Below are positions 7,964-23,495 of a DNA stretch of 64,000 nt, one piece after another. Position 1 is the stretch's first letter, and each line of letters opens with the position of its first letter. Source of the DNA: Rebecca billardiae RCC1528 (Eukaryota; Protista; Haptophyta). Made by a program: the position numbers and the translations under genes. Location: positions 3,596,001 to 3,660,000 of the forward strand of contig OZ251223.1 of NCBI GenBank assembly GCA_965240325.2, read 5' to 3'. The notes beneath the pieces were generated by a model, which ran no database searches, had not been told where the DNA came from, and worked only from the letters and a program-made list of their open reading frames with translations.

Positions 7964-8247
7964 AGGAGACGTGTCTGCTCGCGAGTCGCGACCAGTGCGA
8001 GTTGGGCTCGCTGTTGCCTTTGTTTAGAAACCGTCTAGTAGTACGCAAGGCAGATTCCAATCTCGCGCAGCTGGACAATAGTCATCCAACGGTTGCGTCG
8101 GTTCGCGGGTAGCGTAAGAAGAAGCGTTGCTTGCCGCGGTTTCGGATCGGTTCCAGACAGAGCGGGGTGGGCGGGTCGTCGCGCGTGTCAACCCGAAATG
8201 GTGATGGGCCAGTAGTCACATCGTCTGAGGCCACGAGCTTGGACGAC

Positions 8248-10793
8248 ATGGCCACCGACACGCCCGGGATCGCCGAGGCGCTCGCGGCGTGGCTGCGCGA
8301 GGACCCATGGGCGACGCAGGCCACCGAGGCGCTGCAGGCGCTCGCCGACGACCTCTCCGCCATGGAGGAGAACAGCGAGGGCGTGGCGCCGCTGATCGTG
8401 GTCGCGGAGCGCGTGTTCCTCGTGCCGCTGCTCGTGCAGTACGTGGAGGCGCTGCAGCAGTTCGGCGAGCAGGGCCTCTCGTACGCGTACGTCGCGCTCT
8501 CGATCATCACCAACCTCGCCGACGTCGGCGGCATCGCGCTCGTCCGCCAGCACGGCGGGCTCGCGCTGCTGCTCGCGCTGCTCGACGCGCCCGACCGCGG
8601 CCTGCAGTACTACGCGGTCGTGGGCGTGCAGAACATGGTGGACGACGAGGAGTGCGCGCGCGAGGTGCTCGCGTCGGGCGCCGTGCGCACGCTCGCCGCG
8701 CTCATGGACGTCGAGCGCGACGCCGACCAGGCCGACGACCGCTCGATGCTTTCGGAGATTGCCGAGGCGGCGACCGGCGCGCTCACCAACCTCGACGCGC
8801 GCGTGACGGCGGGCGACGAGGTGGACGAGGACGTGGAGCAGGTGCTGGAGGAGGCGGTGGCGCGGCGGAACGAGCTCGACGAGGACCGCTTCAACGCGCA
8901 GTGGTACGCCGCCTCCATGCTGCAGGCCGTCGTGCGCGGCTGGCTCGCGCGCTCGTCACTGCTCGACGGCGCGACGCTGGCGCGGCGCAACATGGAGCGC
9001 ATCGGGTGGCAGCTCGACCCGCAGCGCGCGGCGCGCACGCGCGAGCTCGGGATCGAGCGGCTCGACTCGGTCCTCGAGTCGCTCGCCGCGGACGACGAGG
9101 AGGAGGCCGCGATCGACGCGGCGCGCGCGCACCTCGTCGCGACCAACCTGGTCGCGCACGCGGTCGGCGCGCTGCGCGCCAACGACACGGCGCTCGTGTA
9201 CCGCACGGTCGGGCTGCTCACCGCGCTGGCGGGGCTGCGGCCGGGCGGCGGCGCGCTGGTCGTCGACGCGGAGGCCGTCTCGCTCTGCCTCTGGCTCGCG
9301 CACTCCGCCGTGCCCGAGCTGCGCGTGCTCGGGCTCACGTGCATGGTCGGCGCGCTCTCCGACGCCGAGGCGTTCAGCGACGACTCCCTCGGCGCGCACC
9401 TTGACAACCTCGCGCTGGAGCACCGGCTGTACGCGATGACGGGCGCGCCGGTGGCGGAGGGGCGCGCCGAGGAGCACGCGCACGCCGACTCCGCCGCCGC
9501 CGCGCAGGTCGCCGAGCTCGCCGTGCAGGCGATGGACATGCTGGCCGAGACGAGCGCGTACACGCGACGGCTGGCGGCCACGATTGTCGGCCGGCACTAC
9601 CGCGGCTTCGAGGCTCGGCGCGCGGCGGAGCAGTGGAAGATCACGCGGCGCAAGGTGGGCAAGGCGATCGACGTGATCCAGCACTTCTGGCGCGCGCACC
9701 ACGACCACGCCGCGCTGCTCCGCGCCGCGGAGAAGGCGGCCGCGGCGGAGGTGGCCGCCGCCGCCGCCGCCGCGGACGCGGACGCCGCCGCGGCCGCCGC
9801 CGCCGCAGAGGCCGAGGCGGCGGCGCAGCGCGAGGCCGAAGCGGCGGCCAGGCGCGAGGCCGAGGCGGCGGCGCAGCGCGAGGCCCAGGAGGCCGCCAGG
9901 CGCGAGGCCGAGGCGGCGGCGCAGCGCGAGGCCGAGGAGGCCGCCAGGCGGCAGGCGGAGGCGGAGGCGGCGGAGGCGGAGGCGGAGTGGGCGCGCGAGC
10001 AGGCGGAGGAGGCGGAGGCGGAGGCGGAGGCGGAGCGCGCGCGGGCGCTCGCCGAGGCCGAGGCGGCCGCGCGCGCCGAGGCCGAGGCGCGGCGTGTCGC
10101 CGAGGAGGAGGCGACGGCGGCGGCGGCGGCGGCGGCGGCGGCCGAGGCGGATGCGGCGGCGGCCGAGGCGGATGCGGCGGCGGCCGAGGCGGATGCGGCG
10201 GCGGCCGAGCCGACGGCCGCGGCCGAGGCGGAAGCGGCGGCGGCGGCGGCGGCGGCCGAGGAGACTGCGACTGCCGCCGGTGCTGAGGCGCGCGACGAGC
10301 CCGCGCACGTCGACCCCGCCGAGCTGGCGGCGCAGCAGCAGCAGCAGCACGAGGCGGCCGCCCGTCTGATCAGCGAGCGCGAGCGTGCGCGGCGCGCGGG
10401 CGCGCAGCAGCGGCGCTACTACGTGCGCATGCGCGTCGCGTCGCGCGTGATCGGCCGCGCGTACCTGCGGCACTACAAGCGGCGCATGCCGCCGCGCATC
10501 CGCGCGGCGGTGCGGCTGCAGCACCGCGCGCGCGTCTTCCTCCTCGCCCGGCGCCGGGAGCGGCTGCGCACCGAGACGGCGCACGTGCCGGACGCGGCGG
10601 CGGCGGCGCACGCGGCCGCAGAGGAGTTCGCCCTTGCCGAGCAGCAGCGCAAGCTGACGGTGGCGGAGGCGCTGGGGGTGGAGAGCGCGGCGCGCGCGGC
10701 GGCCGGGCAGAAGGAGTACCGCGCGCCGCAGCCGGACACGGGCGAGGTGCTCGCTCGCACCGCGCTCGCCGCGGCGGGGCACGAGCAGCTCGA

Positions 10794-10824
<31 letters not shown>

Positions 10825-12699
10825 CCGGGTGTGTCGCCGCGCGCGGAGGAGGACTCGACGCCGCTGGCGAAGAAGGACTCGCACCTGGCGATGCTGGCGC
10901 GGGGGCAGACGGAGCGTGACTTCCTGCGCGCGAAGGAGCTCGCCGCCGCCGCGCTCGCCGAGGAGCACGACGCCATCGCCCGCGCTCTCGCCGAGGAGAA
11001 GGCGGCATCTGAGGCAGAGGCGCGCGAGGTGCACGACGCGATCGCCGCGGCCAAGGCGGTCGCGCTCGAGCAGGGGCACCTGGTGAAGCGCACGGCGGCG
11101 GAGGAGGAGACGCGCGCGGAGCGGAGGGAGCGCGCGAGCTCGGCGAAGAACGCGCCGCCGCCGCACTACGCCGCGCCCACCGCCAACGCCAAGCGTCGCG
11201 GCTCGTCCGCGAGCACGCTCCGCGCGTCTGTCAAGGCGGCGGCGCGCAGCTACGCAGACGCGGACGGCGGCGGAGGCGGCTCGGCGCCCGGCTCGGCGGG
11301 CGGGACGGGGGGCGGCTCGCGCGGCGGCACGGCGAGCTCGCACCACGCCTCCGCCCTCCACGCAGCCACCCCGCCGGGCACCGCCGGCGCCGCGGCCATG
11401 GGCGCGGGCGCCGAGGGCGCGGGCGCGGCGTGCGCGCCGGGCTCGCGCGGCGGCATCCTGTCGCAGGGCTCGTCGCGGGAGCGGCGCAGTCGGTCGCAGT
11501 CGCGCGGCGTGTGCTTCTCCGACACCTCCGGCACCGGCGGCTTCTCCACGCCCGCCACCGGCTACGCCGGCAGCTCCATCGGGCTCGGCGGCGGCTCCGT
11601 CTCCGAGGACGGCGGCGGCTTTGGCGGCGGCGCCGACGCGCACGCGGCCGAGCGCGGCGGCGCGCCGCCGGGCAACGGCTTCCTCTCGCCACGCTCGGCG
11701 CAGCTGCAGAGCGCGGGCAGCGCCGGCGGGAGCGACGCGCTTGGCATGGGCGTCGCCTACCCGCCGCACGCGGGCCTGCCGCCGGGCGCGTACGCACCGC
11801 CCGACGTGCTCTCGCCTGTGCGCGCGGCGCACGCCAGGCAAGGGCCGCGCTCGTCGCCGACGCAGCTGCCGCCGCTTGCGGCGAGCGGCGAGCACCCGAC
11901 CGCGCCGCCGCTGCGCACGCTCGCGCCGCCGCCGGTCTCCGGCGCGTGGCAGCCGCCGCCCCGCGCGCCGCGGCCGCTGCTCGCGCCGCGGCCCGAGCCG
12001 ACGGGCGCCATGCGCCCGACAGAGGCCTCGCGGCACGCGGCGCGTCTGCTGCCAAGCGTGCGCGCCACGCGCGACGCGCGCTCGCGCCAGGAGGCGGCAG
12101 GGCCGTCGGCGCCGCCGGCCGGCGCCGAGCCCGTCTTGCTGGGCGCGTACGCGCCGGGGCCGCAGGAGCGGGCGGTGCTGCGCGGCGCGCTCCCGCCGCC
12201 GCCGCGGCGCGGCCGCGTGCGCGCGCAGCCTCCGGGCCGGCCCGCGCCCACCACCCGGCCCGCGGCCGCCACCGCCTCCACAACCTACTCGCAGCCCGAG
12301 CGACACGCGCTCGCGCGCGCGCACCCGTTCCAGGTGCGCAGCCGCCGCCGCGCGCGCGACCGCGTGCCCCACGGCCCGCCCGCGCGCGAGCCAGAGACCG
12401 ACGCATCTCGCGCGCGCGCGCTCGGCTCACGCCCCGCCGCCGCCCGGCCGCGCGCCGCCCCCGCCCGGCCCTGCCCGCGCGCGCTGCAGCTGCCGGATGA
12501 CCTGGAGCAAGCCCTCGCGTACAACAGGGAGAGGCACCGGCTGCTGGGCGACATGGGGCTGCTGCCCGCCGCGAGCACGAGGCTCAAGCGCGGGGGCCCG
12601 CTCCCGGGCGCGCTGCCGCCGAGCGGGCCGATGTCGCTGCAGGCCATGCCCCCGCTGATGCGCTCGGACGGGCTGCCGTTCGACATGGGGGCGCGCTGA
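8248..12699 (+). CDS. Armadillo-repeat plus multi-IQ-motif protein with Ala/Glu-rich helical repeats; probable in-frame intron 12334-12489
   Basis: ARM-like units (ALSIITNLA...LVRQHGGLALLLALL; AATGALTNL). IQ-like motifs AASMLQAVVRGWLAR, ATIVGRHYRGFEARR, IDVIQHFWR, AAVRLQHRAR. High GC3. Confidence 0.75.
9810..10262 (+). repeat. Coding tandem repeats: 24-bp (EAEAAAQR/EAEAAARR) and 21-bp (AEADAAA) arrays
   Basis: Seen directly in the sequence and its translation. Confidence 0.85.
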
Positions 12700-13014: not shown

Positions 13015-16000
13015 TCAAATGTCGATTGTCCTCGGCTGCGCCGACTGTGCGCCTGACGTCGCTGACAGCTGGCCTGACGATGCGTCATCATCGGCATCAC
13101 CACCCTCTGTCTCCTCGTCGGGCAAGTCAAAGTTGGCCTCCATGAGCGCCTCCAGCGGCCGCGCCACCGCGGCCTGCAGCTGCAGCAGCGCATTCACCTG
13201 CACGCACGCGCGCGGGGTGTGCGCGCGTCAGCATCCCGGCGCGCGCGCTCAGCAAGGCGCCGCCAGTGCAGTGATGGCGCGGGGCGTAGCGCGTGCGCGC
13301 ACTCGCTGCTGCAGGTCGTGCGTCTGGTGGAAGGCAAAGTCGCGGAACTGCTCGTGCCACTGCTGCACGGTCGGCTGCACCGTGTTGATCAGGTGCCAGC
13401 GGCGCGGCTGGTGGCCCTGCGCAAACTCGCGGATGGCCGCCCAGAAGTCCGGCTTCTGCTCGGAGATGACCTCGCCCTTCTCGCGCTCGAGGGAGATGGC
13501 GGCGTCGACGAGCTTGCGCGCATGGCGCGTGTCCTGCACCTGCCCGAGCACCCACCGCTTGAGCTCCCGCACCGTGGGCAGGTACTTCTTCTGCTCCTCG
13601 ACCTCGAGCACGTCCTTCATGAAGCGCACCTCCTCCGCGTCGTCCGAGCTCACGCCCCCGTCCGGGACCTGGTGCGAGCCGAGCTTGGCGCCGCGCGTCG
13701 TGAGCAGCGTGCGCACGATCGGCTGCTCCTCGCCCTGCTCGCGCATCGCGTCGTCGAGCGGCGTGTTCCCGTACCTGCGCGCCCGCCGCGCGCAGCGCGC
13801 GCGCGTGAGCGCGAGCGCGCGGCCGCGGGAGGGGAGGGAGGGACTCACCGGAGGGCGGGCGCGCGCGCGCGCACCGGTCCTCGACGTTCGGGTTGATGTT
13901 GGGCAGCTCGAGCAGGAAGTGCGTGGCGTGCACGCGCGCGTTGGACGTCGCGAGGTGCAGCGCGGTGCGCGCGTCGTAGTCCCCCGCGTTCACGTCGCAG
14001 TGGTGGTCGATCAGCCGCTGCAGCGTGGCCACGTCGTTGCGCGCGGCCGCGGCGCAGAACTGCACCGCCGCGTCGAACTCGCCCATGTTGGCGCTGTGCC
14101 GCAGCAGCAGCTCGGAGATCTCGGCGTGCCGGCCGTGGAAGGCCTCCTGCAGCGGCGTCGAGCCGCGCCGGTCCTGCGCGTTCACGTCCGCCGCGTGCTG
14201 GATCAGCAGCCGCGCCGCCTCGACGTTGCCCTCGGCGGCGGCGAGGTGGAGGGCCGTGCGCTTGCCGTGGTTGGCTGTGTTCACGTCGGTCGGGTCGAAC
14301 GCGACGAGGTAGCGCAGCTCCTCGAGCGAGCCGCGGCGCGCCGCGACGGCGCAGAGCAGGTCGGCGATGTGCGGGTACATGCGCTGCGCGCCGTGCGCGA
14401 GCAGCACGCGCGCCGCCGCGTCCTGCCGGTGCGTGAGCGCGTCATGCAGCGGCGTGGTGCCGTTGCGGTCGACCACGCTCACGTCCGCGCCCGAGAAGAT
14501 GAGCACCTCCATCACCTCGACGTGCCCCGCGCACGCGGCGACGTGGAGCGGGCGGCGGCGGTCGTAGTCGCCGGCGTTCACGTCGATGTCGCGCGTGCTC
14601 AGCAGGTGGCGCACCTTGTCCAGCTCGCCCTTCGCGCACGCGCCGCACAGCTGCACGGTTGCGAGGTCGGAGCGCTTCTTCTTGGCGTTGGCGATGATCT
14701 GCGCCGTGAGGCGCGGCGCGCGGTCGTGAGCGCGGCGTGGCGGAGGCGGGCGGCGCGGCGTGAGCGCATCACACGGCGGGGCATGCACGTTGCCGCGGGC
14801 CGCGCCGCTCGCGCGCAGCGCCAGCGCCACGCCGCCCGGCGCAGGCGCGCGCCACCGTCGTCCGCCGACCGCGGAGGCCGGCCGGCCGCGCGGAGCGCCT
14901 GCTGCCGCGCGGAGCGCCTGCTGCCGCGCGGAGCGCCGCACCTTCTGGATCGTGCCGAGCTCCTCGAGGTGCGCGGTCTTGGCGGACTTGGCGGACCTGC
15001 CCGCGACGGAGTGGAGGTCGTCAAAGTCGATCATCGACTGGCCCGCCGAGCTGCGCCGCGCGAGCGAGCGGCGGGAGGAGGCCTTCGACTTGGCCGAGCG
15101 CGCGCTCATGAAGCCTGCGCACGCGCGCGCGGGCGCGCGGCGCCGGGCGCGCGCGAGAAGAGGGGTGCGGAGCGAGCGGAGGTGGCGGGTGAGGCGCGCC
15201 GGGCGCACGCGCGGCGCGGCGGCGGGCGTCGGCGCAGCAGCCCCCGGTGCACCGTGCGTCGGGCGCGGCTGCCCGCCGAGCGCTGCGCACGCGCCCTCCC
15301 CGCTTGCGCTTGCGCTCGCACGCGCGCGATGCGTGTACGCGCGCGCACCTCCGCCTCCGCCGCCCGAGTGTATTTGCATCGCGTTGTCCATCAGCACGTC
15401 CTCCTGCTGCGGGAACGACTTGAGCAGCACCTTGTACCGCTCGGCGGTGAGCGCGAACAGCTTCGTCTCCTGCGCGTGCGTCGAGCGCGCGTTGCTCACG
15501 TGGCGCATCCCAAAGACGAACGGCAGCTCGCCGAGCGTCTCGCCCGCGGACACGGTCTCGGCGCCGTCCGCCTCCTCCTCCTCGCCCTCGTCGTACACCT
15601 CGACCATGCCGGACTCGAGGATGAAGAGCTCCTTGCACACCTCGGTCACGCGGAAGAGGATCGTCTCGGGCTCGACCGTGCGCTCGCGCAGCAGCGACGA
15701 GAGCCGGTCGACGAAGCCGTCGGAGCAGTTCTTGAAGAGAGGGCAGTCGCCCACGAGCGCGCGGTTGGTGACGCGCGAGACCTCGATCTGCAGCGCGATC
15801 GGCATCTGCGCGTAGATCTGCTCGTCCGCGACGGCGGAGAGCGACGCGTCGCGCAGCCGCGCGTGGAAGAAGGCCTCGATCTGCGCGCGCAGCGAGGACG
15901 GCACCTTCACGTGGTTGAGATAAACCTGCACGAGCTCGAGCTGGGCGCGCTTGGTGACGATCTCGTCGTCCTGCCGCATCACGAGCGCCGAGATCTTGCC

Positions 16001-19000
16001 GACCGCAAACGCGTAGACCGTGAAGTTGAGGAGCATGAGGAAGAGCTGGAAGCCGATCTCGAAGTAGTTGGCGGGCATCTGGCCCGAGCCGAGCGTCGTG
16101 ATCGCCGAGATCACAAAGTACATCGACACTACGTACCGGTGCGCGAGGATCGCCTCGGGCGAGACGACCGACGGGTCGAGGTCGTCCGCGGAGGTGCCGC
16201 CGACCGCGGCGACGTGATCGTTGAACTGCTGCGGCCACGCGTACCCGCCCGCCAGCTCGGGCAGCGCCGAGTAGCCGTGCACGTTGAAGAGGCACGCGCA
16301 CACGTGCGAGGTGAGCAGGATGATCCCGTTGTACTGCACCAGCCCGGTGAGCAGGTTGTCGTCCGCCTTGGTGCGCTCAAAGTGGCGGTACGCGCGCAGC
16401 ACGTACCGCGCGTTCACCAGCTTGAGCAGCCGCAGCGCGACCACCACCAGCCCGCGCACGCCGAGCGCGAGCGCGAGCAGGTCGTTGGGCCACGCGGCCA
16501 GCGCGTCGAGCGTGAAGTCGGTGGCGAGGTAGTTGCGCCGGATCTCGGCGGGCGCGTACACCGTCACCGACTTGGAGTTCTGGAAGGAGGTGGCGAAGCG
16601 CAGCGCGATGCGCGCGATGTAGTACGCGTCGACCGCGTAGTTGATCGGCCACACCCACGCCAGCCGCTCCACCTCCGCGGCGAAGCACAGGTGCACGGGC
16701 ATCTGCAGGAGGTCCCACACCACCAGCGCGATGAAGAAGCGGTCGGCCAGCCGGTACGCGAGCGACGTGTGCGACACCACCCACCACGGGTGCTCCGCGC
16801 CGCCGCCGCCGCCGTCGGCCGAGCGCGGCGACGTGCCGGCCGTGCTGCCGCGGTGCTCGAGCGCGCGCCGCAGCCCGGCGAGCAGCCGGTTCGTCAGCCG
16901 CGCCTCGACGGCCGCGCGCACGCGCGCGTCCACCGCCTGCTTCTGCAGCTGGCGCACCGCGTCGGACAGCGCCTTCGCAAGCGCCTCCCACGTGGTGCCC
17001 GCGGCGGCGGAGGGGTCGGGCTTGGCGGCGGCCGATGGCGCCGACTTGGCGGGCGGCTCGCCCCTCGCGGCGGCCGCGGCCTTGAACGAGTGGCCAGAGG
17101 AGCCCTCCAACGCCTCGCGCGAGTTGCGCGGTCCGCCGTCTGTCTTGGACGTCACCGCAGCTCCATCCTCCGGCGACGCGATCTTGTTCTCACCCGACGC
17201 GTACGACCCCGCGTACGACCCACGACGCGGCTTGGCCGGCGAGCTCGTCTCCTGCGGCGCGCTCGGCTCGGGCGGCGCGCTCTCGCCGCTCAGCCTGATG
17301 CCGCCGCCCAGCCTCTTCTCGTACCAGCCGGCCAGGTCGGACGGGGTGGCCGCGGCGGCGGCGGGCACGGTCGCGGCGACGATGGCGGCGAGCTCGGGCG
17401 GCGTCACGGCCTTCTTGGCCTGCAGCCGCCCGGACTCGATGCGCGAGGTGATCGCGTTCCCCACCATCGCCAGCGCGTCCGCAGTGCCGAGCACGCGCGT
17501 CAGCTGGGCGTCCGCGTCGTCGGCTGCCGCCATGGCCTCCGCCTTGGTCGGGCTGCCGGCTGCGCCCTTGGCGCCGCCGGGTGGCGGCACGGCGCTGCCG
17601 AGCGCGGTGTCCTTCGCGCCGATCTTGAGCAGCGGCACGCCCACCGTCACCGCGCCCGCCGGGCTGCCCGGCACGCCCGGCGCGCCGCCGGCCTCGCCGA
17701 GCTCGGCCATCTCTGCCGCCTCCTCCTCCGCGGTCGAGAGGATCCACGCGGCCGCGCCCACGTAGAACTGCGACGGGCTGAGCTGCTTGGGCCGCGCGGT
17801 GACCTGGGGCATGCGCGACACGGCCTTCTGGTGCGCGCTGTCCTCCTCCGCCGCGCCGCCACCCTCGTCGCCGCCGCCGCCGCCGCCGGCAGCGGCGCCG
17901 CCCTTCTGCTTGTCCGCGGCACCGCTGAGCGCCGCCGCGGCGTCGAGGAGGTGGCCGACGAGCGAGCGAATCTCCGAGCCGCCGAGCTCGCCGAGCGTGC
18001 CCTGCAGCGCGCGCACGTCCCTGAAGCGGATCACGCCGCGCCGCTGCCCGTCGAACACCTCGTACAGCTGCTCGAGCACGTGCACCGACTCGACGAGGGC
18101 GATCGGGTGGTTGAGGGCCTGCCGCGACGCCGCGTCCGTCGCCGAGGTCAACGACTGGTCGCTGGCGCCGCTCTGCCCCCTCGCCACTCCGGGGACCGGC
18201 ACGCGGAGGGTGTCGGTGCTCCGCTCGGCGCACGACGGCTCGTTCTCGGGCACGATCCGCACGCCGTTTGCCGGCCCTCCGCGCCGGCTGCGGTCCAGAA
18301 TCATCGTGGCCTCGCCGGTGAGTGTGGGCGGCGTGCAAGCGCGCGGGCCGGCGCCGGTGCCGTCGGGCGCGGCGAGCATCGCCGCCACCGCCTCGCCGCC
18401 CGCCGAGGAGTGCGGGCTCGTCCCCGTCACGCGCGATGGGCCACGGATGTGGCTGATACGGCTCAGGCGGCTCAGGCGGCTGGTGCGCAGCATGCTGCCC
18501 AGGTTGTCCACGGCGAGCCGGTTGCGTGCGTACCGCCCGCGCCGAGCGGCGTCGATCGCAGCGTCCTCGTCCTCGCCGTCTGCAGGGCCGCCGCCGACGG
18601 CCGGTTGACTCGCCGCCGCGTCCAGCTCATTCGCATCCATCGTGCGGCGCATGCGGATCGGAGAGCGCAGCGCGCCCGCCCACATCGAGCCGCCGTCTCC
18701 GCGCTGGCTCTTGTGGGAGGCGGCCGTGCGCGTACCCTGGTTGGCGCGCGCCTCACGCCCCGTGGCCGCGGTCACGAGCGAGCGCACAAAGGTGGACGAG
18801 AAGAAGAGCGTGCCATACCCGATCTCCGAGATGAAGAGCGGCGTGACGGCCGGCTCAGAAGGCGCGGCAGCTGCGCCTTCAGCCGCGTCGCCGCCGTGCG
18901 AGCTGCCGCGCGCGTGCCCCGCTCGCCGCGGCGGGTCGCGCCCGCCCGATCTGGGCGAGGTTGTGCTCCGGCGCTGCGAGCGGATCATGTGGCTGTCGCC

Positions 19001-22000
19001 GCTGCCGCGGCGCGCGCCCGAGGGGCGTTGGCCCGGGCTATCGCCGTGGCCGCGCTGCGCGACGATCGGGTTGCCTGCGCCCGCGACGGTGCTGCCGCGG
19101 TGCACGGACCTCAGCTCGGGCGAGAGCGAGCGCGAGCCTCCTGCCACGGAGGAGCGCTTGCCGCCGCCCAGCTTTGAGCTCGTCCGCGACGAGTCTCTGC
19201 CAGGGGCTCCCAGTGCCTCGTCGCCGGGGTCCCTGCTGCGACGGGCGGCCGAGTTCCTCTTCTGCCCGGCTGCAATCCCGCCCCACTCGAAGTTCCCGCT
19301 GAGCGCGCCCGGCTCGTGGCTCCCGCGGCCGGAGCGGCCGCGCCGGATGCCAGTCTCCGCGCCCCCCTCGTCCGAATCGTCGCTGTCCGACTCGTCCATC
19401 CCACTCCGCGGCGCTGCGGGCCCGAGCAGCGCCTTGAGGTCTCGGTAGATCTCGAGCACCGCCTGCGCCGCGACGGTCTGCTCGAAGCCGCAGTCTGAGA
19501 CGAGCACATTGCGCAACGCCTCCTCCTCCTGCACCCGCCGCAGGTCTGCGCGCAGGTGCGCGCGCGCGGCGGGCGAGAGCTTGCGCTCGAACGCGAGCTT
19601 GAGCATCGTCAGCCCCGCCTCCGCCTTGGGCAGCCGCAGCACCAGCCGCAGGAACGTCGACTTGGCCACCTCGCGGCTCGCGACGCGCCCGTCGCCGCCA
19701 GCTGAGGTGCGGCGATTCTTGGCGCCAGAGCCGATCGGCCCGCCGCTCAACGGCGTCACCAGGCCAGCGACGCTGCTCACGCTCGCCCCCGGGCCGCCGC
19801 CGTCGGACACGGGCGCGTCGCACGCCGCGAGCGCGACGGTCCCGCCACCGCCAAAGCTGCTACCGCCGTCGTTGCCACCCACGTAGCCGTTCTGCCCGTT
19901 GAAGCTGCCGCCTTCGCTGAGGACCTCGTCGAGCGAACGGCAGGCTCCGCCGGGCGCGGCGCGGCCAAAGCTGCTCCCGCCGCCGGGCTCGGCGCGGCCT
20001 AAGCTGCTCCCGTCGACCTGCCGCTTGCTGTACGACTTGTCCTGCTCGTCGTCGAAGAAGGAGGCGTCGCCCTCGCCGTCCTTCGAGTCGTCCCCGTCGT
20101 CCTCGAGGTCGAGCGAGTCCTGCGACGAGCCGTCGTCGTCGGAGTCGTCCAGCGCGTACGCGTGGATCCAGCCGTCGATCGAGCGCTCGAGCTGGCCAAA
20201 CAGCCGCGTCTGCAAGTTGAGCAGCTCGGTCACGCCGCGCACGAGCCCCTTGAGCTCGAGCTCGAGCTGCCGCCGCGCGCCCTGCTTGGCGGTAATCACC
20301 TGCATCCGCCGCTCCGTGCGCACGTGCAGCTTCTCCAGCGAACTGCGCATCGAGATGTTGCCGGACGCCACATAGAGCGCGTGCGTCACCTTGTCGTCCT
20401 TGAAGCGCTCGGGCAGCTCTGCCGACGCCTGCTGCACGAGCAGCCCCGCCACCTCGATGTTGTGCTGCAGCGCGTCGATGAGCGCGGAGCAGCCCCAGCG
20501 GTCCTCCGACGAGACGTCCGCCATCGCACTCACCAGGCAGTGCGTCGTCGAGATCGAGCCCGCGCACACAGCCAGGTGGAGAGGCGTGCGCGCGTCGTAG
20601 TCGCCCGCGTGGAAGGGCGCGCCCGCGTCGATCAGGAAGCGCGTGAGCTCGACGTCGCCCTCGGAGGCGGCGATGCACAGCCGGTCGAAGACGGTCTCGG
20701 GGTTGGCGCGCGCGCCGCGCTGCACGAGCAGCTGCGAGACCAGCTTGTGCCCGTTGCTCAGCGCGTCGTCGATCGGCTTGTTGCCCCAGCGGTCTCGCAG
20801 GTTGACGTCTGCCAGCGAGGAGACCAGGTACTCGACCAGCCGCATGTTGCCGTCGGCCGAGGCGAGGTGCAGCGCGGAGCGGCCGTCGTAGTCGGCGGTA
20901 TTGATCTCGATGCCGTGCGCGAGCAGCGCCTGCACGTGCTTCACCGAGCCGTCCGCCACCGCCTCGAGCAGCAGCGCGGCGGGGCGCTCGAGCTGCAGCT
21001 CGGCGCCGTGCCGCTTGAGCGCGTCCGCGACCTCGTCGTGGTGCGAGACGACCGCCTCGCGGATCGGCGCGTGGCCCCAGCGGTCCTCGAGGTTGGGGTT
21101 GGCGCCGAGCTCGCACAGCAGCTCGACGACCTTGGCGTTGCCCTCCGCCGCGGCGAGGTGCAGCGTCGTGCGCTTGTCGTAGTTCCCCGCGTTCACGTCG
21201 AGCCCCTTGGCGGCGAGCGCGCGCACCGTCTCAACGTCGCCGATCGAGGCGGCGTAGCTCATCTGCGTGATCGCCTCCTCGTTGCGCACGGTGATCGCCT
21301 GCTGGATGAGCGTGCGGAGCTCGTCGAACTCCTCCTGCTCGTCCTCGGAGAGCGCGCCCGCGCCGCCCGCGCCCGCGCCCGCGCCCGCGTCCAGCGCGTT
21401 CCCCTGCTGGTCGAGCCCAAACTTGCGCAGCAGGTTGAAGGTGATCAGGTCCGCCTGCTCGGGGTAGGATGCGATCGTGTCGTCGTAGTCTGTGCCCGCG
21501 AGCACGAGCAGCGTCACGTCGCCGGCGGCGGTGGCGCTCACGGTGAAGGGCTGCTGGATGCCGAGGAAGAAGCCGAGCTCGCCGACCACCTGCCCGTCGC
21601 CGAGGTCCGAGCGGATCGTCGCGGAGTGCGAGTCGCCCTTCTTGACGTGCAGCGAGCCGTTGGTCAGCCAGAGCAGCTCCCTCGAGCCCTCGCCCTTGTT
21701 GAAGAGCACCTCGAGCGGCATCACGTACCGCTCCTTGAGCACGATCACGATCTGGTTGAGGAACTGCGGGTTGCACCCGTAGAAGACCCACGCGCCCTGC
21801 ACGTGGCGCGAGTGCCGCGCCGACGCCACCTTCACCTTGAGCGAGAGCGGCATCTGGTCGAAGATCGTCTCGGTCGCGCTCGAGCGCTTGGCGTGCTGGA
21901 ACTCAAAGTGCGCGCGGATCTTGCGCGAGATCGACGAGGGCAGGTTGCGCTTCGAGCAGTACTCGTCGACGGCGCGGAGCAGCTCCTTGAAGTACGCCGT

Positions 22001-23068
22001 GTTCTCGTCCACGCGCACGAGGTAGTGGAAGAGCGTGCCGAGCACGAACGCGTAGAAGACGATCTGGATCAGGCAGATCAGGATGGCGAAGGCGATCTCG
22101 TTCGTCTTGGTGAACGTGGCCGTGCCGTACCCGAGCGCGGTCACGCCCGCCCACGCGAGGTACGCGGCCATCAGGTAGCGCTGCGCGTCGGTCGAGTCGT
22201 GCGGGTCGAAGTGCGGGTTGCCCGTCAGCAGCTCGAACTGCGCGCTCCAGCTCGGCAGCTCGAGCTGCGCGCCTGTCGAGTGCTCGGAGATCAGCCACCA
22301 CGCGCACGCCACCCAGTGCGGCACGCTGAAGAGGAAGATCGAGAACTTGTACACGGCGAGGAAGGTGACGTTGGTCGTGAGGTCGCCGTTGAGCTGCTGC
22401 ACGTACAGCACGAGGTCGTGCGCGCGGCCGCAGCGCACGAGCTGGCCCAGGTACCACACCCAGGGCCACCCCGCCGCCATGAAGACCACGCGCCCCAGGT
22501 GCAGCACGAGGATCGTCAGCAGGTCGCGCGCCATCCGGCGGCGCGAGTACACGCCGCCGCCGCCTCCGCCGGCGGCGGAGGCGGCGGCGGCGGAGCCGCC
22601 GGTCTTGCCCGACTTGCCCTGCTCGCGCAGCCGCTGGTCGTGCGCCAGCTCCTGGTACACGCACGCGAGCTCGAAGCAGTCGGCGAAGACGTCGACGACG
22701 ATCACGGCGGGCGACCAGAGGAGCGTGCGCGGGAACGCGGCGCGCATGGGGATGGCAAAGAGCTCGTACGTGAGGAGGGGCAGGCGCATCAGCTTGTACA
22801 GAGCCACCCACTTGGCGCGGAGCTCGTTCTCCGCGTCGCGCTGCCGCTGCTCCACGTCGGCGTCCAATGTCTCCTCGAGCCCGCCGATCAGGCCGGGCAG
22901 CCACGTGACGCGCAGGTGGCGGCGCGCGCCATGGTGGGCACCCCGGTGGGCACGGAGGATGCCGCCCGGCGCGCCGCCGCCCGATGACGCGCCCGGCTTG
23001 CCCCGCCGGTCGCCGCAGCACCGCCAAGGGCACCACGACCACGCGCGCACGTCGCCGTTATCCACCAT
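13015..23068 (-). CDS. Tandem two-module cyclic-nucleotide-binding/ankyrin (Shaker AKT/SKOR-like) cation channel, ~3123 aa; introns 15348-15115, 14941-14699, 13874-13775, 13302-13198
   Basis: Module 1 has TM segments, pore TALGYG, C-linker, cNBD (VVGELGFF) and ankyrins (DYDKRTTLHLAAAEG). A long linker contains an EF-hand-like FDGQRRGVIRFRD. Module 2 has S4 LRLLKLVNAR, pore TTLGSG, cNBD (TLGELPFVFG) and ankyrins. The spliced length (9372 nt) is a multiple of 3. Confidence 0.9.
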
Positions 23069-23495
23069 CCCCCCTTCTCAGCAGAAGGGGCGGCTCATCG
23101 GCGTTGTAAACGCGTGCCTTGTCGACCCACGACGAACCTGATGAGCATTATCATAATTGTGCCGATGAATAACTCGAACGATAATATCATCGTGGTGTTG
23201 AGCAGGAGATAATATGAGTAAAAGCTTCTGATGACCAATGAGGTTGCCTGTCTTGACGAAGCGGTTTCGAATCGTCGCATATGCCGCGAAGGTTCTGAAT
23301 TCCGGGTCGAATAAGGTTCTGTGGATCCCTCTTACGTGAAATGATTGCTGACAGATAGATCGCGCCATTATTCGGATGATGAATACTAATGACGCGCGAA
23401 CAATACGCACGACACTACCTGATGATGAATCCTAACCAATGGCGGGTCGTAAGTATTTTAAAAGTAAAGCTTCATTATGCGGCGAATATTATTTT

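Follow-up and report, generated by a model that had tools for sequence, protein, structure and literature searches.

Ankyrin-bearing plant-type Shaker channels are usually seen as a feature of the green lineage. In the two-pore channels (TPCs) TPC1 and TPC2, each chain carries two non-identical six-transmembrane (6TM) units, and a dimer of chains forms a pore with two different filter loops; in plant TPC1 the cytosolic linker between the repeats contains an EF-hand-type domain. Concatenated channels fix subunit order and stoichiometry, something that electrophysiologists usually must engineer. Within the family of channels with a cyclic nucleotide-binding domain (CNBD), one survey reports two-repeat tandem proteins only from the stramenopile-alveolate-rhizarian (SAR) group, namely dinoflagellates, oomycetes and chlorarachniophytes, with TVGYG-like filters in both repeats and in an account that never uses the word ankyrin (Pozdnyakov 2020, PMC7576140). 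The K+-selective cyclic-nucleotide-gated channel of sperm, CNGK, has four repeats (PMC4749565). Here we describe a gene of the haptophyte Rebecca billardiae RCC1528 that lies on the reverse strand of contig OZ251223.1, within a stretch of 64,000 nucleotides (positions 3,596,001 to 3,660,000; hereafter the window, whose own coordinates are used throughout). The explanation that best fits the observations overall, and that we consider probable, is a tandem of two diverged AKT/SKOR/GORK-like units that dimerises into a cation pore of relaxed selectivity.

The ORF listing of the window contains a stop-free open reading frame (ORF) of 3313 codons at 13127-23068 (-). Pfam identifies cNMP_binding followed by ankyrin repeats in its first 1000 residues and again in its last 1157, and matches no family in the 1156 residues between the two modules, which we call repeat 1 (r1) and repeat 2 (r2). 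For both transmembrane (TM)-CNBD halves the best Protein Data Bank (PDB) sequence matches are SKOR and GORK (phmmer, E ~1e-25 to 1e-27), followed by AKT1, KAT1, SthK, HCN, CNG and KCNH. The match of r2 to GORK runs from S1 on, while that of r1 to SKOR begins at S3/S4, and the S1 of r1 is weakly hydrophobic. An AlphaFold model of r1, with a predicted local distance difference test score (pLDDT) of 81, aligns with AKT1, GORK and SKOR over ~480 columns; judged by this model, r1 is a complete 6TM-C-linker-CNBD unit despite the missing Pfam Ion_trans match. The two repeats share 27% identity over the pore, C-linker and CNBD (E 2e-28), and their filters co-align.

Basic residues in S4 number 2-3 in r1 and about 3-5 in r2 according to the alignment. 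The phosphate-binding cassette of r1, GELGFFLGIQQPFTV (...QQPFTVSA), has the plant-Shaker QP[YF]TV form without the canonical Arg, and that of r2, GELPFVFGMRHV (...MRHVSNA), has R-H in place of the canonical Arg-Thr/Ser. The r2 version is conserved as FGxRH, with His aligned at the Arg position. The canonical Arg-Thr/Ser-Ala cassette is therefore found in neither repeat, and because both deviate at the phosphate-binding Arg, cyclic-nucleotide gating is doubtful. No Pfam match to the KHA domain (PF11834) was obtained with the ORF pieces, with the C-terminal exons of the gene model or with the tail that follows the r1 ankyrin repeats, and a comparison of the tails after the two ankyrin domains revealed no mutual homology.

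That the two modules belong to one gene, not two, is strongly supported by the sequence of the linker and by its relatives. The GC content of third codon positions is 0.86-0.98 in 100-codon windows of the linker, read in the frame that both modules share, and in 30-codon windows it stays at or above 0.77 throughout exon 1, linker included. Over 1059 linker codons there are 0 stops in the ORF frame and 3-19 in each of the other five frames. The minimum GC content of the linker is 0.69, without a dip like that of the intergenic flanks, and four islands within it are kept at the protein level in up to 11 relatives. Both repeats are covered by two MMETSP ORFs, P0268 of 3020 aa and P0005 of 2647 aa, the latter flagged as complete. 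Three proteins from Rhodelphis marinus (2487-2739 aa), with identifiers that look transcript-derived from their form, contain both repeats too. NCBI gene models of Diacronema lutheri, Cymbomonas tetramitiformis and Bryopsis sp. span both repeats as well.

The JGI contig L004 (9.1 kb) also spans r1 and r2, with one frameshift in the r1 C-linker. We regard it as transcript-like because its ORFs are long and free of the intron inserts of the window, and because an AT-rich 3' tail follows the last ORF. The break falls at 1400-1450 of L004, and P0010, a second assembly of the same protein, stays in frame there; the break may stem from misassembly or from a short intron that was retained.

The sequence-only reading of this locus had placed two channel-CNBD-ankyrin modules in one stop-free frame, and the Pfam matches in both halves together with the SKOR/GORK matches in the PDB bear this out. 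It had proposed a prediction of the membrane topology; hydropathy fits 12 TM segments with a cytosolic linker, and no linker segment has a convincing score. The single chain that it envisaged stands on codon periodicity, stop counts, conservation and the ORFs of relatives. The 3313-codon ORF is not the exact product, because the gene has four introns, and the stop of the spliced model, at 13017-13015, coincides with the start coordinate given in that reading. The 2:2 pore with alternating filters that it derived from a dimer of this chain is plausible.

Joining the five exons gives a coding model of 9372 nt, equal to 3123 codons, with one terminal stop. This spliced model was used locally only, to check frame and junctions, to map BLASTP matches, for hydropathy and as the source of the r1, r2 and linker pieces, which all come from exon 1; database searches used window sequences. 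The introns range from 100 to 243 nt, and all four begin with GTGCG and end with GCAG. Introns 1 and 2 are multiples of three without a stop, so that ORF finders read through both. At the third intron, splicing joins EDR to YGNTPLDDA, which matches the orthologues, and from there on the final ~250 ORF codons lie out of frame (third-position GC 0.34, first-position GC 0.97). Exon 3 has 46-53% identity to orthologues in tblastn, and the N- and C-termini of orthologues line up with the ends of the gene model. The window as a whole has 59-81% GC per 2-kb bin; the flanks of the gene are GC-poorer, at 0.40-0.53 upstream and 0.51-0.61 downstream. The ATG is preceded, at a distance of 12 nt, by a TGA in the same frame.

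Two local features of this region deserve mention. Directly upstream of the start codon, at 23069-23450, GC falls sharply to 0.40-0.53, and this segment is probably a promoter and 5' untranslated region shared with the next gene. Within the linker, residues 1371-1410 (18869-18988, -) have flat codon-position GC (0.83/0.83/0.80) and form an insert that is not present in orthologues; this may be one more intron that keeps the frame, or simply low-complexity sequence. Elsewhere in the linker, codon-position GC provided no clear case of an additional intron of this type.

The two pore filters differ from each other and from those of plants. Filter 1 is TALGYG followed by Thr, with Ala in place of the second Thr of TTVGYG. 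Filter 2 is TTLGSG followed by Gln; it has both Thr residues, lacks the Tyr, and aligns as TTLGSGQ, residue for residue, with TTVGYGD of AKT1. Neither has the plant TxGYGD form. Among relatives, the first and second filters read TALGYG and TTLGME in P0005, TSTGYG and SGLGLN in L004 and P0010, TSMGYG and TALGIA in P0120, and TSNGYA and TRTGQT in D. lutheri KFE25_001874. P0011 has ASMGYG in r1 and does not cover r2, and TNLSTG is also found among the orthologous second filters. In r1, GYG is present in 7 relatives, all from a haptophyte subclade, and G-Y in 15 of 18 sequences; distant members have GYD, GYQ, GNL or AFV. In r2, G[YF]G is missing from all 36 sequences, and what is conserved is limited to [TS]xxG, the Pro that follows, and S6.

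These alignments indicate that filter asymmetry is a family-wide trait and that GSG itself is peculiar to this genome. The sequence-only reading had located both filters exactly and had noted that Asp follows neither of them, and the asymmetry that it emphasized holds across the family. Lack of conservation of GSG in orthologues was one of the outcomes that it had named as refuting, and this weakens its specific GSG claim: the second filters of orthologues read TTLGME, TRTGQT, SGLGLN or TNLSTG and keep [TS]xxG only. Since GSG is unconserved in this way (GME, GQT, GLN), K+ selectivity is not established. Its term "K+-type" is an assumption, given that even filter 1 has Ala at the second Thr and that Diacronema has GYA. 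A sequencing error, which it had named as another possible refutation, is unlikely: the Ser codon, TCG, is two changes away from TAC, TAT, TTC or TTT, and a single miscall cannot turn a Tyr or Phe codon into it.

Two of the four islands in the linker, C and D, may together resemble a known fold. Island C has the consensus LFxxFDxxGRGxI..RDVRxLQGxLGE..SEIxSL and island D the consensus QFFVGAAAWILA. AlphaFold predicts a lobe of four helices (helix pLDDT >90) that also has two short strands paired with each other; its top structural neighbours are EF-hand lobes, for instance those of calmodulin, troponin C and centrin. Pfam EF-hand models have no match in the linker, and the loop ligands are non-canonical (DGQRRGVIRFRD). 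The loop D-G-Q-R-R-G-V-I-R-F-R-D departs from the pattern of acidic or polar ligands at positions 1, 3, 5, 9 and 12, and the Arg at loop position 5 is conserved within the family. Islands C and D are predicted, from the model and at modest match scores, to be a degenerate EF-hand pair.

We then considered the distribution of this architecture. An exhaustive profile-free search with r2 returned 6477 relatives at E <=0.001, and the best 150 of these include proteins of 2000-3000 residues in which a module of r1 type is joined by a long linker to one of r2 type, each of them followed by ankyrin repeats. Named members are the D. lutheri paralogues KFE25_001874 and KFE25_008060, the three proteins from Rhodelphis marinus, and those from Cymbomonas tetramitiformis and Bryopsis sp. 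The family also takes in several sequences from MMETSP and from metagenomes. By sequence, the family is present in haptophytes, in green algae (a prasinophyte and an ulvophyte) and in Rhodelphis. Closest to the gene in the window are P0005 and P0011, with 55-56% identity, and the same clade holds D. lutheri; this position points to a haptophyte that is probably near Pavlovales and is distinct from D. lutheri. Searches of a literature library found no description of a doubled AKT/SKOR-like ankyrin channel family, which is apparently undescribed.

In a quick-search tree of 50 module sequences, the r1 sequences form one clade with a Shimodaira-Hasegawa-like approximate likelihood ratio test (SH-aLRT) value of 99. 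The r2 sequences cluster together with ankyrin channels that have only one module, for example one of Cyanophora, and r1 and r2 have matching internal branching patterns. The Saprolegnia diclina tandem P0188 (both repeats, with relatives), an oomycete two-repeat channel of the published kind, and a four-repeat protein fall in a different supported clade. The tree and the co-branching indicate that the fusion is old and separate from the published tandem CNBD channels.

Other observations were made on the relatives. Four-repeat CNBD-channel proteins with a CNGK-like layout are common among them, including P0007 (labelled Prymnesium, a haptophyte), P0131 and about 30 others. The D. lutheri gene model KFE25_001874 (KAG8466118.1, P0006; 2034 aa) differs from a continuous ORF of 2899 codons (L001-L003, P0001) by omitting residues 333-826, 2192-2273 and 2453-2693 of the latter. 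The omitted parts correspond to the CNBD and ankyrin repeats of r1 and to part of the ankyrin repeats of r2, and this model is probably over-spliced.

The 12-TM topology with a cytosolic linker suggests a two-chain dimer with alternating filter loops. Two chains would dimerise such that four pore loops alternate r1-r2-r1-r2 around a single pore, as in TPCs. The K+-type G-Y-G is carried by the r1 loops only; the r2 loops keep the TTxG scaffold, have lost the aromatic residue, and vary between species. Such a pore would be two-fold symmetric. With K+-like sequence in just two of its four strands and drift among species in the remaining two, it would more likely be a cation channel of relaxed or shifted selectivity than one strictly selective for K+. 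Gating probably depends on voltage together with cytosolic partners of the ankyrin and linker domains, and less likely on cyclic nucleotides, since both cassettes are without the canonical Arg.

Several points weigh against this interpretation. Dimerisation, loop order, conduction, selectivity and gating are all inferred from sequence, and so are the single transcript and its four introns, in the latter case with the help of relatives; a search for sequencing runs covering 14650-20600 listed no RNA run for this genome. The voltage-sensor part of r1 is divergent, and Pfam, searched to E 0.01, gives no Ion_trans match for it; the loss of the r1 GYG in distant members means that the pore may conduct unusually. 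For the lobe formed by islands C and D, the top Foldseek rows are all EF-hand proteins, yet at E >=2 they are not significant; VIA re-alignment with calmodulin and troponin C lobes covers 66-76 residues at Z 5.5-6.9, which is below 8. The lobe probably does not bind Ca2+, as judged from its loops. Finally, the quick-search tree places r1 on a long branch, and either internal duplication or a fusion between two paralogues may have given rise to the tandem.

Among the competing explanations, the one that survives best, although we think it improbable, is essentially that of the sequence-only reading, a K+-selective channel in which TTLGSG, odd as it is, keeps the carbonyl geometry and modifies rectification or conductance. 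The second pore loop of K2P channels carries GFG or GLG, and r2 of the gene in the window keeps T-T-x-G-x-G position for position with TTVGYGD of AKT1; r1 carries GYG, and the nearest solved relatives are all K+ channels. Across the family, however, the second Gly of r2 and the residue between the two Gly are unconserved (GME, GQT, GLN, STG), which implies that selection is not maintaining a GxG filter. Even the K+-like strand is imperfect, with Ala replacing the second Thr of TTVGYG in r1 and GYA in the Diacronema orthologue, and loss of contiguous filter sites abolishes K+ selectivity in NaK, CNG and HCN channels.

A less probable explanation again, which we regard as quite unlikely, is that the central pore does not conduct at all, the protein serving as a sensor or scaffold or conducting through its voltage-sensor domain as HCNL1 does. 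A CNBD-family channel with a dead pore, HCNL1 offers a precedent (PMC7306766). The wide variation of the r2 filter among orthologues, next to a conserved pore helix and S6, and the disappearance of the r1 GYG in distant members would be consistent with this idea. On the other hand, r2 conserves [TS]xxG with the Pro behind it and the residues of S6, and the pore modules are shown to be under purifying selection by their strong codon bias and their conservation. There is also no sequence sign of a permeation path through the voltage sensor.

The last explanation, very improbable, is that two neighbouring single-subunit genes share an open frame by chance across an intergenic or untranslated linker: stops are rare in DNA of 73% GC, an antisense ORF of 2052 codons without any Pfam family (13019-19177, +) shows that chance ORFs grow long here and makes a long open frame alone weak evidence, and the ORF runs through two introns without meeting a stop, but the in-frame third-position periodicity throughout the linker, the stop counts, the GC profile and the conservation of the islands as protein across species lead us to reject this reading, and the transcript-derived ORFs of relatives that hold both repeats and the mirrored r1 and r2 trees also speak against it.

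A tandem that probably dimerises into a pore of relaxed selectivity remains our preferred explanation. The coordinates of its features are collected in Table 1.

Table 1. Features of the tandem channel gene, in the coordinates of the window and in the order of transcription.
Feature	Position	Strand	Description	Evidence
Whole gene	13015..23068	-	ATG at 23068, TGA at 13017-13015; five exons	
Exon 1	15349..23068	-	7720 nt; r1, linker and TM-pore-CNBD part of r2	Stop-free; third-position GC
r1 TM part	22019..22816	-	S1-S6, residues ~85-350	phmmer, AlphaFold, hydropathy
Filter 1	22124..22141	-	TALGYG, residues 310-315, then Thr	Translation, alignment
r1 CNBD	21467..21730	-		Pfam PF00027, 36.4 bits (cut-off 27.5)
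r1 ankyrin repeats	20459..21286	-		Pfam Ank_2/Ank_4/Ank, E 1e-26 to 1e-39
Linker	16784..20176	-	~1100 residues, mostly low complexity, four conserved islands	Stop counts, GC, islands
Island A	19424..19657	-	FLRLVLRLPKAEAGL...EIYRDL, ~80 residues	BLASTP, 9 relatives, E 1e-17 to 0.015
Island B	18779..18841	-	FISEIGYGTLFFSS; consensus FISEIGYxxLFxS	Alignment, BLASTP
Islands C and D	17723..18121	-	EF-hand-pair-like lobe with disordered insert	Alignment, AlphaFold, Foldseek, VIA
r2 TM part	15974..16771	-	S1-S6, residues ~2100-2365	Pfam Ion_trans, 26.6 bits (weak); hydropathy
Filter 2	16082..16099	-	TTLGSG, residues 2324-2329, then Gln	Translation, alignment
r2 CNBD	15422..15682	-		Pfam PF00027, 34.1 bits
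Intron 1	15115..15348	-	234 nt, in frame, stop-free, GTGCGC...GCGCAG	Periodicity lost; no orthologue has the insert
Intron 2	14699..14941	-	243 nt, in frame, stop-free, GTGCGG...GCGCAG	No orthologue has the insert
Exon 3	13875..14698	-	r2 ankyrin repeats	Pfam Ank families, E 1e-27 to 1e-36
Intron 3	13775..13874	-	100 nt, frame-shifting	tblastn frame switch at this point
Exons 4 and 5	13303-13774, 13015-13197	-	C-terminal tail	tblastn with orthologues, boundaries; no Pfam match
Intron 4	13198-13302	-	Between exons 4 and 5	Boundary inspection

A neighbouring ORF of 1522 codons (8131-12699, +) is convergent with the channel gene and has a weak Armadillo-repeat match. It overlaps the GC-richest part of the window (81% at 10-12 kb).

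The family represents a doubled, unstudied form of plant-type Shaker channel that occurs in haptophytes, in prasinophyte and ulvophyte green algae, and in Rhodelphis. If its loops are arranged as proposed, it would provide a natural 2:2 set of K+-type and non-K+ pore loops, kept over a very long time, and, provided that the protein can be expressed, the number of canonical filter strands required for K+ selectivity could be tested directly. We put forward only tentatively the further idea that the family re-invented the two-pore-channel design from an AKT/SKOR-type Shaker channel, with an obligate 2+2 pore, mixed loops and a novel selectivity. If this is true, such a pore could have a selectivity unmatched by homotetrameric Shaker channels, for example permeability to Na+ or Ca2+, or tuning by species through the drifting r2, and a family shared by Archaeplastida and haptophytes would amount to a natural experiment on the filter-strand requirement for K+. 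The TPC-like layout is another example of the internal oligomerisation that has arisen repeatedly in voltage-gated-like channels. In practice, the gene models of this family in public databases seem unreliable: the Diacronema model drops whole domains.

The closest described systems are the plant channels AKT1, SKOR and GORK. Each repeat has their domain order (6TM, pore, C-linker, cyclic nucleotide-binding homology domain, ankyrin repeats), they are the best PDB sequence matches of both repeats and the best structural matches of the r1 model, and the r1 cassette shares the plant QP[YF]TV type. Identity is only ~20-26%, however, and whereas plants use four separate subunits, the gene in the window fuses two units per chain. 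It also differs from plant Shaker channels in lacking KHA, in having TALGYG-T and TTLGSG-Q rather than TxGYGD filters, and in its ~1100-residue linker with conserved domains of its own.

The published tandem CNBD channels (PMC7576140) likewise have two 6TM-CNBD repeats per chain, with separate, co-evolving clades of first and second repeats. In contrast to those tandems, r2 of the present family has no TVGYG-like filter (0/36 with G[YF]G), and common descent with the oomycete and dinoflagellate tandems is not supported, the repeats of P0188 falling in a separate supported clade of the quick-search tree. Among the matches of the r2 search, tandems that lack ankyrin repeats, such as P0188, are 1200-1400 aa in all and have short linkers, whereas the protein described here has ~3100 aa and ankyrin repeats after each channel module. 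CNGK is also a concatenated CNBD-family channel with diverged repeats, but it has four of them and no ankyrin repeats, and P0131, the one four-repeat protein placed in the tree, forms a clade of its own. TPCs differ in having neither CNBD nor ankyrin repeats, and the EF-hand-like loops of the gene in the window lack Ca2+ ligands. In overall layout, including the predicted EF-hand-like lobe in the linker, the protein is similar to TPCs; this likeness is one of layout and not of descent, as no TPC is found among the 60 best PDB matches of either repeat.

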